Sequence record: LC727698.1
DNA: 64,000 nucleotides
Strand: one strand, 5' to 3'
Part shown: positions 10,174 through 55,536 of the stretch, piece by piece
Numbering within the stretch: position 1 is the stretch's first letter
How the letters are laid out: each line of letters begins with the position of its first letter
Translations under genes and position numbers: made by a program
The notes under the pieces: model-generated
The model's database searches: none
What the model saw: only the letters and a program-made list of their open reading frames with translations
What the model was told of the DNA's origin: nothing

Positions 10174-12536
10174 TATAGATTTACCCAGGATGAAAAATAT
10201 ACTTGTAATGATGCTAATCCCGGATCGTCATATTCCCTCGAATAATCTTGATAACCGGTTCCGTCGTTGTTATTAAAATTACTGTTTAATGTACTAGCAA
10301 CGTCAAAGTATGATAATGTTTTGTTATAGCAATATATAGACACTGCTCTAAATGCTTTAGAATAGTTAACAACATCTCCCTCTATGGCACCTACGTGCCC
10401 CTCTGACATACATTGTGTCATAACAACATAATTTGTATTTGTTGGACGCAAAGTAGTAAAATAGAATCTATATAATCCTGTTCCTAATTTTGTTATAGAT
10501 AAGTTTAAAGTGTTTATTACAAAGAAGGAACCGCCCGTAAGGTTTGTGTCTGAGAATGATGCCAGACCTTTTGGCATATCTATTTCTACTTTCCAGTCAT
10601 ATCCTAAATAAGTTACTAATTGGTCCCTGCTAGCAAAACGAACATAATTGTCATTGGTATTATTGTTTCTAAATGTTACTTGGGCATTTATTGACATAGG
10701 GTCTGCATTAGTGTATGTCATACTAAATGAAGATGCAGATAGATACCCGCCGTTTGCATCAGGAAGATTAGAAGGTGTATATCTTACTGCTATTGTGTTG
10801 GCACCCGGACTAGTTGAATTTATTTTACCGTTAAGTAAATATGAATCTACGGCAGTACCGTTCCACGCCAATGCTCCTACTTCGGCAGCGGTCGGCGGCC
10901 GTCTGTCGTGGAATGCTAAATTACCAGAACCTATATATAGATTGTCTGCTTTAAATGATATGATACTATTTGCTACTAATGGTGTATTTATTGCACCAGT
11001 ATTATAGAAGACAAACTGTATTCCGTTATCTAATGTATTGTTAGTAACCATATTCATACTAACAGCAGTAGTATTATTTTGAGAATGAATATCTGTAACA
11101 GTACCGCCTAGTATTAGACTAGTTCCATAATTGGGTTTATATGCTAATCTGAAACTATTATCATTCATTACTATTACATCTCCTGATGTAACAGATGAAG
11201 TTATAGACGAAGTAACAAACGGTGTTTGTTTTTTAACGTAAGCTGTGCTATCTAACCCGCCTAGTAATTCTGAATCTGGAGAAGAACTATTTGATTTATC
11301 TACGAATAGATTATTATATTCTTGGGAATTGTATGTTTCGTTTTTACCATATATAGATAAATTATTTCTAGCGGCTGCCTTATTTAAAACATCTGCTAGG
11401 TTCAGTGTTTTATCGAATGTATTTACGTTATCTACTAATCCCAGACCTATCTGTTCTTTTGTAACTTGATGAGGGTCGTTTTTATCATTAATGTGAGCAC
11501 TAAGTAAATCTAATGTGCCCTGAGTTAATGGATGCCATTTTGCTAGATTTGTAAATTCACCGGGTTCTCCTACATATACATAAAATGATCCTTGTGTCCC
11601 GGGTCCCTCTGTTTTATACCATAGTTGTCCTTTTATAGCATTTTGGGGAGGAGAAGAACTAGCAAAGTTTTCTACCATCCATATCATGGATTCACTAAAT
11701 GCTTTTTCGTAACCTGCCGAATTATATCCTGGCATAGATATAGAAAGTAAGTTAGAAGAAATATAGTTATCAGGTACATTTAATCCTGGAATCTTGTTAT
11801 AGCACTTTGCAGAAAAAGATAATACCTCGAAAGTACATAAATCCTGATTACCTGATACAAATCCAAATAATGCAGATGTTTTAAAATCAGTTAGTGTATC
11901 ATCGTTTAGATCTATAGTAAACACCGAGTTATCTATTATTACGTTAGAATTCCAGTCGGAACACTTAGCTGTTATTTTATTATTTTCTCTAATTACATTA
12001 ATAATTGTATATCTATTTGACCAACCGAGATACCCTGTAGATGATGTAGAAGTAGCCCCAGCAGGACTATTAATTCCTATTGTTTTACTAGAAAGAATCG
12101 TTCTAGTTTTATTGTTATCTAAAATTAGTTCCCAATTCCTTCCGGATCCGCTGCTAGATGTGTTACCTAATGACCGGACAGCAGATATATATTTTCCTTT
12201 TTGTCCAGCAACACACAAACCTAACCTGTTATTTCTTATAGAATTGCTAGATATTTTTATTGTAATATTAAAATCACTAACTTGATCCATGTATAACGCA
12301 TAGCTATATAACGATGCTGCATTAGTTGATATAGGATCGGGAGTTCTTGTGTAAGAAAGAATAGAAGTAGCTGACCATCCTGCAGTGACGCCGCCTATTG
12401 CTTTTCCTTCCCATGCATCATACAAGTTAACTGATGTAGCTTTTGACCAATCAGAAACAACTTCTTGGTAACTAGGAAAAGAAGTTAGTTCTCTATTTTG
12501 GTAATAATTATTTGATAAACGTAATTCGTAACCCAT
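10173..12536 (-). CDS. Tail fibre / receptor-binding protein, paralogue 3, with extra N-terminal beta-rich domain (787 aa)
   Basis: ENFASSSPPQNAIKGQLWY and DPHQVTKEQIGLGLVDN motifs; about 240 additional N-terminal residues. Confidence 0.75.
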   Translation of the reverse strand: MGYELRLSNNYYQNRELTSFPSYQEVVSDWSKATSVNLYDAWEGKAIGGVTAGWSATSILSYTRTPDPISTNAASLYSYALYMDQVSDFNITIKISSNSIRNNRLGLCVAGQKGKYISAVRSLGNTSSSGSGRNWELILDNNKTRTILSSKTIGINSPAGATSTSSTGYLGWSNRYTIINVIRENNKITAKCSDWNSNVIIDNSVFTIDLNDDTLTDFKTSALFGFVSGNQDLCTFEVLSFSAKCYNKIPGLNVPDNYISSNLLSISMPGYNSAGYEKAFSESMIWMVENFASSSPPQNAIKGQLWYKTEGPGTQGSFYVYVGEPGEFTNLAKWHPLTQGTLDLLSAHINDKNDPHQVTKEQIGLGLVDNVNTFDKTLNLADVLNKAAARNNLSIYGKNETYNSQEYNNLFVDKSNSSSPDSELLGGLDSTAYVKKQTPFVTSSITSSVTSGDVIVMNDNSFRLAYKPNYGTSLILGGTVTDIHSQNNTTAVSMNMVTNNTLDNGIQFVFYNTGAINTPLVANSIISFKADNLYIGSGNLAFHDRRPPTAAEVGALAWNGTAVDSYLLNGKINSTSPGANTIAVRYTPSNLPDANGGYLSASSFSMTYTNADPMSINAQVTFRNNNTNDNYVRFASRDQLVTYLGYDWKVEIDMPKGLASFSDTNLTGGSFFVINTLNLSITKLGTGLYRFYFTTLRPTNTNYVVMTQCMSEGHVGAIEGDVVNYSKAFRAVSIYCYNKTLSYFDVASTLNSNFNNNDGTGYQDYSREYDDPGLASLQVYFSSWVNL

Positions 12537-12560
12537 GACAATGCTCGATATTCTTTATGA

Positions 12561-12568
12561 TATTTATC
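12561..12568 (-). promoter_or_regulatory. Putative late promoter GATAAATA for the fibre operon
   Basis: Octamer 25 nt upstream of the ATG at 12536. Confidence 0.55.
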
Positions 12569-12631
12569 ATAGTAATTTTAGGTAAATTTATGAAATTATA
12601 TTTATTTTCTTTTATAAAACATAAAATATAG

Positions 12632-12660
12632 TTGTTTAATTTAACTGGGTGTAATATAAT
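12632..12660 (+). promoter_or_regulatory. Putative sigma70 promoter for the candidate ncRNA
   Basis: TTGTTT-17 nt-TATAAT. Confidence 0.5.
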
Positions 12661-12665
12661 TTGTA

Positions 12666-12935
12666 GTGTATGCAATACATTTGCATATATACCAAGCACT
12701 GTATGGTGAGTTGCATACAGCGATGGGCAATCGTAGTGCCGACATTGATCTAGTATGATCTGAAATAGGTCCCTTACGCCGAGGTAAGGCTATCTGGCAC
12801 GGATAGTAGTGGATGTGTATGTTCGAAATAACGATATCATATTTTAGACATACGCCGCCGTCAGCATTTTTAGTTTGCAACTGCTGATATCTTTAAGTTT
12901 TGTTGATGGCCGGGGGTGGTGCCCAGTGCATTTTT
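12666..12935 (+). ncRNA. Candidate structured ncRNA of about 265-270 nt, family not recognised
   Basis: GC island (110/240 = 46% over 12691-12930) with at least 8 helices, a long-range closing stem, a possible pseudoknot, G-U pairs favouring the + strand, an upstream promoter and a 3' T-run. Confidence 0.7.
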
Positions 12936-13131
12936 ATTGTAGAGTTAATGTGTAAAAGAAATAAATGTGCTTAAAGACGAGGTTCTTTTCTAAAACTGTT
13001 TCTAAAAATAATTGCGTTAAAACCTTGGGTTTAATTAATGTATTATATATGCTATATAATTAGCCCTACATAAACATGTATGTTTAACTTGTTTAGTTAA
13101 CAATAAAATATGCAAATTAAGGAATTAACTG

Positions 13132-13299
13132 ATGACCAAATTTAATAAAAAATCGTTAGATACATATGAAGATAGAGAAGATTATAGAGATGAAGAAACT
13201 GGTGACAGGTTAAATAATAAGAAATCTGAACCTAAAAAAAATAATACTGATTATAAGCCGTTTGGTAAAATTACCAACCGCTATAATAATGATAATTAA
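13132..13299 (+). CDS. Small charged hypothetical protein (55 aa), below the ORF-track cutoff
   Basis: AAGGA SD then ATG; MTKFNKKSLDTYEDREDYRDEETGDRLNNKKSEPKKNNTDYKPFGKITNRYNNDN. Confidence 0.65.
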   Translation: MTKFNKKSLDTYEDREDYRDEETGDRLNNKKSEPKKNNTDYKPFGKITNRYNNDN

Positions 13300-13327
13300 A
13301 TAGTAAATATTATTATCATTTACTACG

Positions 13328-13747
13328 GTGATAATAATGATAGAAACTATTTTAACCTCGAGAGTATTTGCTTATGCAGTTTGCATAGGTATAATATCGT
13401 TAGCAATAACGCTCTCATATCAAAAATATCAAAAGCTTATTAGTGTAAATAAATCTCTTGAACAATCTATAGAAACGTTAACTAATGATAATAATTCATT
13501 GCAGTTAACTATTTCTGAACAAAATAAAAAGATTGAAACATATATTCAACTTAGATTATATGAAGAATCTATAGCCAAACAAAAAGCAGAATCACATGCT
13601 GCTTTAGAAAAACAATTACAAGATACTAAATCTCAGTTAAATGAATTAATAGAACGTAGAAAGAATGAGGCACCAAATGATCAAAGTGTGTTATGCTCTA
13701 CTGTCAGGATTGATCCTGCTTTACGCAACTGGATGCTCGCAAACTAA
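13328..13747 (+). CDS. Inner-membrane spanin (i-spanin, Rz-like)
   Basis: Single N-terminal TM helix followed by a long coiled coil; overlaps a lipoprotein gene. Confidence 0.8.
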   Translation: MIIMIETILTSRVFAYAVCIGIISLAITLSYQKYQKLISVNKSLEQSIETLTNDNNSLQLTISEQNKKIETYIQLRLYEESIAKQKAESHAALEKQLQDTKSQLNELIERRKNEAPNDQSVLCSTVRIDPALRNWMLAN

Positions 13748-54661: not shown

Positions 54662-54666
54662 CGTGT

Positions 54667-55536
54667 ATGACATTCCATACATTATATAAATATGATAATT
54701 TTGTAGAACTGTTATATGATAACGGTATACTTTCTTGCAATTGTAAATTATTGGATAATAGACCTATGCATTCACAAACAATAAAACTATACAAAGGTGT
54801 AGATAATCAAGTAAAATTTAGGGTTTATAATCCTGATAGACGATTAGTAAACATTCATGGACTTTCTGTGTTTGCTAGTTTAATTAATACAGAAAATAAA
54901 GAACGAGTGCTAGTAAAACAGTGTGATATATATGAGCAGTCTCCTGGAATTTTTATATTGTCTATATTAGAAGGAGATCTAATAAATGTGCCTAATGGAT
55001 ATTACACTTTGAGTATAATAGGACAAGAAGAATTTATTCCCGGCATATCTAATATAGACGGACTCCCTGTAATTAGTACGCCGTTTTATACAAATACATC
55101 ATCTGATATACAACTGTATGCAGAAGTTAGAGATAGTTTAGAAAAGGCGCCCATAGACACTATAGTTGCTACTGAATGGCGAAAAGTAATAAACACTGAT
55201 TATACTTTTAATTATTACAATGCAGGTCCATTTCCATCTAATAGAGTAAAAAATTATAGATCGGGTGTGCATACTATTGCAATATATGCAGAAAATTTCA
55301 CAGGTAAATTTGAAGTATATGGTACATTAGACCAAATTCCTTCGCTAGAAGATGAATTTAGTTCTTGGTTTCCGATTAATTTAAGATCTATGTTTGATTA
55401 TATTCAGTTTAATAATTTCACTGGAATAATGCCATACACTTTTCAAGCAAATGTTCTTTGGTTAAAATTCCGTTGGTATCCGGATTCGACAATCCCAAAC
55501 AATGGAGAAATTTCTAAAGTAATGTTAAGAAGTTAA
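54667..55536 (+). CDS. Putative virion protein with beta-sandwich domains (289 aa)
   Basis: Late promoter; beta-rich IKLYKGVDNQVKFRV...GYYTLSI pattern. Confidence 0.55.
   Translation: MTFHTLYKYDNFVELLYDNGILSCNCKLLDNRPMHSQTIKLYKGVDNQVKFRVYNPDRRLVNIHGLSVFASLINTENKERVLVKQCDIYEQSPGIFILSILEGDLINVPNGYYTLSIIGQEEFIPGISNIDGLPVISTPFYTNTSSDIQLYAEVRDSLEKAPIDTIVATEWRKVINTDYTFNYYNAGPFPSNRVKNYRSGVHTIAIYAENFTGKFEVYGTLDQIPSLEDEFSSWFPINLRSMFDYIQFNNFTGIMPYTFQANVLWLKFRWYPDSTIPNNGEISKVMLRS

Follow-up and report, generated by a model that had tools for sequence, protein, structure and literature searches.

The window analysed here, 64,000 nucleotides of sequence record LC727698.1, is from a PA5oct-like Pseudomonas jumbo phage (Wroclawvirus). 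When phages were searched with blastn in distant mode, positions 12560-13000 matched 11 Pseudomonas aeruginosa jumbo phage records at 98-100% identity, at one place in each record. All 11, which include PA5oct, MIJ3, Paride and Callisto, belong to the genus Wroclawvirus, the sole genus of the family Arenbergviridae. The segment lies between a tail-fibre operon and spanin genes, a context that an earlier sequence-only reading of the same DNA had described correctly. Its upstream neighbour, on the - strand, encodes a 787-aa tail-fibre-like virion protein. Downstream, the + strand carries the gene of a 55-aa charged protein and two spanin genes, one Rz-like and one Rz1/LysC-like, towards which the - strand genes for a holin-like protein and a lysozyme are convergently oriented. 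The Rz-like spanin (13328-13747) is labelled a structural protein on the basis of virion mass spectrometry in the PA5oct record, which is unexpected for a lysis protein. Between the fibre operon and the 55-aa gene there is, as also described earlier, a GC-rich island, with a GC content of 0.38-0.48 compared with 0.15-0.25 in the flanks. The island ranks fifth among the 240-nt GC peaks in the 64 kb and, with an antisense open reading frame (ORF) set aside, is the sole GC-rich non-coding stretch in the window; in the seven other gaps of at least 150 nt, the maximum GC content in any 150 nt is 0.18-0.38.

The locus is already annotated. In the genome record of Pseudomonas phage vB_PaeM_PA5oct (MK797984), it carries a + strand ncRNA feature, 'putative lncRNA, ncRNA003, annotation based on RNA-Seq data' (locus tag EST35_0168), the sequence of which aligns with the + strand of the window without gaps at 99.5% identity. 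Lood et al. 2020 (PMC7318152, Table 1) reported ncRNA003 from stranded RNA-seq as a 304-nt feature at PA5oct 103065-103368, with 0.01, 0.05 and 0.03% of phage reads at 5, 15 and 25 min (early, middle and late infection, respectively); for this RNA, the paper gives coordinates and read shares only, without promoter, structure or conservation analysis and without a function. These shares are below the genome's average per-base read share. The feature in GenBank is longer, PA5oct 103065-103668 (604 nt, corresponding to window positions ~12679-13283), and ends inside the CDS of the 55-aa protein; the mismatch between 304 and 604 nt is probably a typing error in one of the two sources. A 2018 preprint numbered the PA5oct ncRNAs differently, and its remark on an off-scale 'ncRNA003' is left out here. 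Because the RNA at 12660-12935 overlaps the annotated ncRNA003, it is not a new discovery, and the label 'unassigned' that the sequence-only reading had given it falls away. The same reading's central claim, a non-coding RNA gene on the + strand, is borne out by the published stranded RNA-seq (PMC7318152), by conservation that lacks codon periodicity, by the better fold of the + strand and by one G-U pair that is A-U or G-C in relatives. The island at 12660-12935 is probably the gene for a conserved, structured RNA of ~270 nt, the ncRNA003 of the PA5oct group. Coordinates of the features discussed below are collected in Table 1.

Table 1. Features of the ncRNA003 locus, in window coordinates.
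Feature	Position	Strand	Remarks
-10-like box of the divergent tail-fibre operon promoter	12595..12600	-	within an inverted repeat
Promoter-like site of the RNA	12632..12660	+	-35 TTGTTT at 12632-37, 17-nt spacer, perfect -10 TATAAT at 12655-60
Antisense 79-aa ORF	12641..12880	-	TTG start; annotated CDS in five relatives; probably not a gene
5'-terminal hairpin H1	12666..12690	+	10 bp including 2 G-U, 5-nt loop; ensemble probability 0.93
Published extent of ncRNA003	12679-12982	+	PA5oct 103065-103368 mapped through the gap-free alignment
Closed multi-helix domain	12696..12929	+	closing helix 12696-12700 with 12925-12929; predicted by folding
H2	12701-05 with 12714-18	+	inside the closed domain; predicted by folding
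Invariant core	12713..12859	+	0/147 sites variable, no indels, loops and linkers included (12-14 genomes)
Local hairpin	12721-47	+	inside the closed domain; predicted by folding
Long hairpin	12748-12814	+	inside the closed domain; H4 at its tip (12772-89)
H6	12815-55	+	inside the closed domain; predicted by folding
H7	12857..12910	+	inside the closed domain; pair 12860:12907 varies among phages
3' strand of the closing helix, A and five T	12925..12936	+	candidate unconventional termination site
A+T-rich spacer, poorly conserved	12936..13131	+	17/196 sites variable, 14 indel columns

The predicted start of the transcript, at ~12666, coincides with the first base of hairpin H1. The promoter-like TTGTTT-17-TATAAT arrangement noted earlier is present upstream of it, but, judged as a sigma-70-type promoter, its -35 hexamer agrees with the consensus at only three of six positions, which is below the threshold of the promoter scan, and the site is therefore absent from the scan's list. 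The 10 nt containing the -10 element (12653-12662) recur as a perfect inverted copy at 12593-12602; the divergent promoters of the fibre operon and the RNA have identical -10 regions, inverted and 50 nt apart. Another -10-like box, at 13055-60, faces the 55-aa gene, which, like the RNA and the fibre operon, has such a box in the correct orientation. At the other end of the island, the run of Ts that had been noted (12931-35) is present, but no canonical intrinsic terminator was found by a terminator scan of 12300-13400. The five Ts are preceded by the long-range closing helix only, not by a local GC-rich hairpin, and a T5 run is unremarkable here because the DNA is 67% A+T.

The 276-nt RNA of the + strand is predicted to fold at -90.7 kcal/mol (z = -3.1), compared with -65.1 kcal/mol (z = -1.9) for the minus strand of the same segment. 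This is the lowest minimum free energy (MFE) among 850 windows of 276 nt on both strands, the next being -84.8 kcal/mol, and coding windows of matched GC content fold to only -59 to -78 kcal/mol. The z-score is unexceptional for this genome, as values of -3.0 or lower also occur in 13 of 160 random 276-nt windows of the genome (8%). The earlier description of the RNA as highly structured thus stands for absolute stability but not for the z-score.

The MFE architecture comprises the 5' hairpin and then a closed junction of five abutting helices, and is the same when 487 nt are folded. All 11 helices that had been picked out by eye pair perfectly, and seven G-U pairs distributed among them are specific to the + strand, as had been pointed out; the folding ensemble, however, supports only six of the 11. 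Boltzmann ensemble probabilities are 0.76-1.0 for H1, H2, H4, H6, H7 and the GCAC/GTGC closing pairs and 0.22 for TGGGCA/TGCCCA, the enforcement of which costs just 1.5 kcal/mol. For H3 and H5 the probability is ~0, and the MFE fold exchanges both for the single long hairpin at 12748-12814. Two further proposals, a pseudoknot with GTGCCG (12736-41) and a switch based on the TCAGCA/TGCTGA hairpin, fail in the calculation: each has an ensemble probability of ~0 and is thermodynamically disfavoured. The nested model of the sequence-only reading comes to -66.5 kcal/mol compared with -89.2 kcal/mol for the MFE fold and is thus 23 kcal/mol worse.

For the analysis of conservation, we aligned 14 copies across the intergenic region and 12 copies across 3.2 kb, drawn from GenBank genomes and from ENA and Logan assemblies, the latter found via the 55-aa protein. 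Across 12660-12935, 8 of 276 sites are variable and there are zero indels (12-14 genomes), and none of the variable sites falls in the invariant core. The spacer that follows the RNA contains a higher proportion of variable sites (Fisher p = 0.007). In the fibre gene, 35 of 302 third codon positions (11.6%) are variable, without indels. Overall, the sequences immediately on either side differ among the copies at 9-12% of near-neutral sites compared with 0/147 in the core, although this neutral yardstick is rough because the density of variable sites differs several-fold between neighbouring genes. The variation within the conserved RNA shows no codon periodicity. As far as aligned sequences can, this pattern shows that the core of ncRNA003 is under strong purifying selection at all 147 positions, which is new evidence for function.

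The eight changes in the RNA are consistent with the predicted fold. Sites 12677 (in the H1 loop) and 12712 lie in hairpin loops, four of the eight fall in the H7 internal loop or the 3' linker, and the remaining two are on opposite sides of one H7 pair and arose in separate lineages. At this pair, 12860:12907, the window has G-U, PAC2 has A-U, and MIJ3 and two assemblies have G-C; the G-U state is possible on the + strand alone. No other pair varies, so that covariation gives the fold no formal support: 65 of the 66 proposed pairs are invariant, no pair has changed on both sides, and shuffles attain the observed covariation score in 338 of 500 cases. Within the spacer, a 9-nt direct repeat with 12-nt spacing (12987-13007) coincides with a 12-nt deletion in the SRR24309835 assembly, which looks like slippage in unconstrained sequence.

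Searches for relatives were carried out at several levels. Rfam 15 gave no match at gathering thresholds for the whole window and none at E<=10 for 12450-13150; the classes covered include tRNA, tmRNA, RNase P, 6S, SRP, group I/II introns, riboswitches, self-cleaving ribozymes and CRISPR repeats, as well as phage pRNA, GOLLD/ROOL/HEARO and Pseudomonas sRNAs. The Rfam scan, which had been suggested as a check, and ARAGORN, which reported 0 genes, agree with the earlier failure to recognise tRNA, tmRNA, RNase P, SRP, 6S or group I/II signatures. The search for related copies, another suggested check, was productive only in part. Blastn of phages returned only Wroclawvirus records at least 98% identical to the window, without any homologue outside the genus, and no match to the RNA was found among plasmids. 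Scans of IMG/VR, JGI metagenomes and GTDB genomes were also without match; as these used exact 20-mer motifs, they were sensitive to close relatives only and would miss diverged copies. The neighbouring genes gave little on which a synteny search could be based: the fibre protein has no IMG/VR relatives and only partial, unrelated matches in the protein database, the spanin has no relatives outside the genus to guide such a search, and the lysozyme has IMG/VR relatives, none with another gene in common with the window. All known copies come from one genus and share at least 98% identity, so that a new class cannot be established. The suggestion of a possibly new class of phage ncRNA keeps its premise, the lack of an Rfam family, but concerns an RNA that had already been annotated.

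No paralogues were detected by nhmmer and blastn-short in the window or at the other PA5oct ncRNA loci, and a covariance model built from the core, run on 134 kb (about half the PA5oct genome), recovered the core alone. With filters off, the highest-scoring additional hit of this model, L017:8496-8625 at 14.6 bits, lies mostly within a CDS and was judged to be chance. When the RNA loops were scanned for duplexes with the 69 translation-start regions in the window, none stood out. Several specific candidates were considered and set aside. A type III antitoxin-like tandem-repeat RNA would have tandem repeats of ~30-40 nt, of which there are none: the repeat search of the RNA region found no tandem family, and TRF reported only a 19-nt A+T-rich array outside the RNA. 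The ideas of an RNA anti-CRISPR and of a pseudo-antitoxin are unsupported by the Rfam or repeat searches. An omega RNA, bridge RNA or retron RNA was rejected for want of an adjacent TnpB/IscB, IS110 recombinase or reverse transcriptase gene.

Taking stand-alone and leader models together, we consider it probable that the island encodes a functional + strand RNA. Within this, the reading that we prefer, tentatively and at somewhat short of an even chance, is a discrete RNA of ~270 nt that acts in trans through its invariant core. According to this model, the host RNA polymerase would start at the promoter with the perfect -10 and weak -35 elements, back to back with the tail-fibre promoter. The 5' end of the transcript would be a protective hairpin, and the remainder would fold into the closed domain, with five helices emanating from one junction. 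Most transcripts would probably end at the short U-run that abuts the 3' strand of the closing helix. The RNA would then act in trans, with the invariant core, including its single-stranded loops and linkers, serving as a specific binding surface for a partner that might be a protein or another nucleic acid, of the phage or the host, during middle to late infection. We favour a discrete trans-acting RNA because of the 304-nt extent given in PMC7318152, the variable spacer and the separate downstream -10-like box. The ribozyme, sponge and anti-defence roles that had been floated for ncRNA003 are unsupported.

The main rival, which we regard as unlikely, is that the structured RNA is the cis-acting 5' leader of the mRNA for the 55-aa protein and the spanins, where it would set transcription past the U-run at 12931-35 or stabilise the message. 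The transcript may be such a leader because there is no canonical terminator between the RNA and the 55-aa gene and because the 604-nt GenBank feature extends into that gene; moreover, the RNA is immediately 5' of the Rz-like and Rz1/LysC-like spanin genes on the same strand. Another PA5oct 'ncRNA', ncRNA001 (L017:1264-1499), stops 5 nt upstream of the next CDS and might not be a separate RNA but a 5' leader, so PA5oct features of this name can be leaders. Against this, the 304-nt feature tabulated in PMC7318152 stops well short of the 55-aa gene, the 196-nt spacer is poorly conserved, contains indels and has its own -10-like box (13055-60), the proposed switch hairpin has an ensemble probability of ~0, and no riboswitch or leader family matches.

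It is improbable, in our view, that the constraint acts on the DNA, with a regulator from phage or host binding the inverted repeats at the divergent promoters, or these repeats serving as another kind of DNA site, and the weak transcript being incidental. In its favour are the low abundance of ncRNA003 transcripts (PMC7318152) and the stem sequence that three of the inverted repeats, or hairpins, have in common: this half-site motif occurs 9 times in the window compared with 1.6 expected, with 3 copies in the island, and a similar palindrome is found at 54664-81 in another divergent promoter region. However, the half-site spacings of 5, 8 and 23 nt are unlike those of operators for dimeric proteins, the imperfections of the helices are all G-U on the + strand, the G-U/A-U/G-C series at 12860:12907 fits an RNA helix, and the invariance covers 147 contiguous nt rather than discrete sites. 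The palindrome at 54664-54681 is itself perfect, has the same stem as the three hairpins of the RNA and is flanked by two copies of one 8-mer, at 54654-61 and 54685-92.

Very improbable is the view that the island is functionless, decaying acquired DNA, with its conservation reflecting the shallow, mosaic divergence of the isolates. All copies are indeed at least 98% identical, neighbouring genes differ several-fold in their density of variable sites, and homologues were found nowhere else in the searches of phages, plasmids, IMG/VR, JGI metagenomes and GTDB. The region is nevertheless transcribed (PMC7318152), its core has 0/147 variable sites between immediate flanks that vary at 9-12% of near-neutral sites, and the island lacks indels, of which the spacer has several.

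Least credible, and to our mind scarcely tenable, is the proposal that the conserved feature is the antisense 79-aa ORF as a small protein gene. The ORF is open in all copies, and two of its three internal substitutions are synonymous. Five records, those of Paride, PAC2, Deifobo, Cassandra and Ettore, annotate it as a CDS for a hypothetical protein, and five others that cover this sequence (PA5oct, MIJ3, 30-2, 30-3 and Callisto) omit it. A search of 1.84 billion cluster representatives yielded no true homologue of the ORF product: the matches listed add up 2.8-bit hits to repeats within giant proteins, and its own cluster holds NCBI entries only. It belongs to no Pfam or PHROG family. The ORF starts with TTG and has no purine-rich stretch for ribosome binding directly upstream, its length is 79 or 96 aa depending on an upstream stop/Gln polymorphism (96 in Ettore and MIJ3-like copies), its 49 core codons show zero third-position variation compared with 11.6% in the fibre gene, and the reported transcript (PMC7318152) is on the opposite strand. 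The ORF is probably a spurious call over the RNA gene.

Discrete, stable non-coding RNAs of virulent phages include species C and D of phage T4 and the packaging RNA of phi29. ncRNA003 matches neither in sequence or structure, as judged by Rfam, and, unlike them, is located away from tRNA clusters and packaging genes. Another parallel is offered by GOLLD and ROOL, large orphan RNAs of phages and prophages, which like ncRNA003 are phage-borne, structured, independent of an adjacent protein partner and without an assigned function. ncRNA003 does not match their Rfam models, is two to three times smaller and occurs in a single genus, whereas GOLLD and ROOL occur in many phyla. In position, it resembles lambdoid lysis-gene leaders and the terminator-resistance RNAs of HK022, which likewise follow a promoter on the strand of the lysis genes and have 5' stem-loops. 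In contrast to these elements, ncRNA003 comes without an antiterminator gene, a canonical terminator or a family match, and is separated from the genes by a variable spacer with its own -10-like box.

That the core and its helices constitute a new class of structured RNA, so far limited to Wroclawvirus, with a defined tertiary fold and a specific task in infection, is conceivable but doubtful; putative tasks would include catalysis, or binding a host protein so as to divert it. Jumbo phages contain many unexplained non-coding regions, and PA5oct has been put forward both for use in therapy and as a model for jumbo phages. With the present analysis, ncRNA003, previously no more than an RNA-seq entry, becomes a defined candidate for studies of structure and expression, and the annotation of five genome records, in which the antisense CDS is probably spurious, is corrected. 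Since the RNA is known from a single genus only and lacks an assigned function, its broader importance is limited at present.

PA5oct carries a second annotated orphan ncRNA, ncRNA004 (L018:1617-2235; PA5oct 246116-246734), in a divergent intergenic region adjoining a minus-strand structural operon. It has no Rfam match and no sequence or model similarity to ncRNA003. Folded as 641 nt, it reaches -191 kcal/mol (z = -5.0, 20 shuffles); ncRNA004 is thus more strongly structured than ncRNA003 and may be a second such orphan class.
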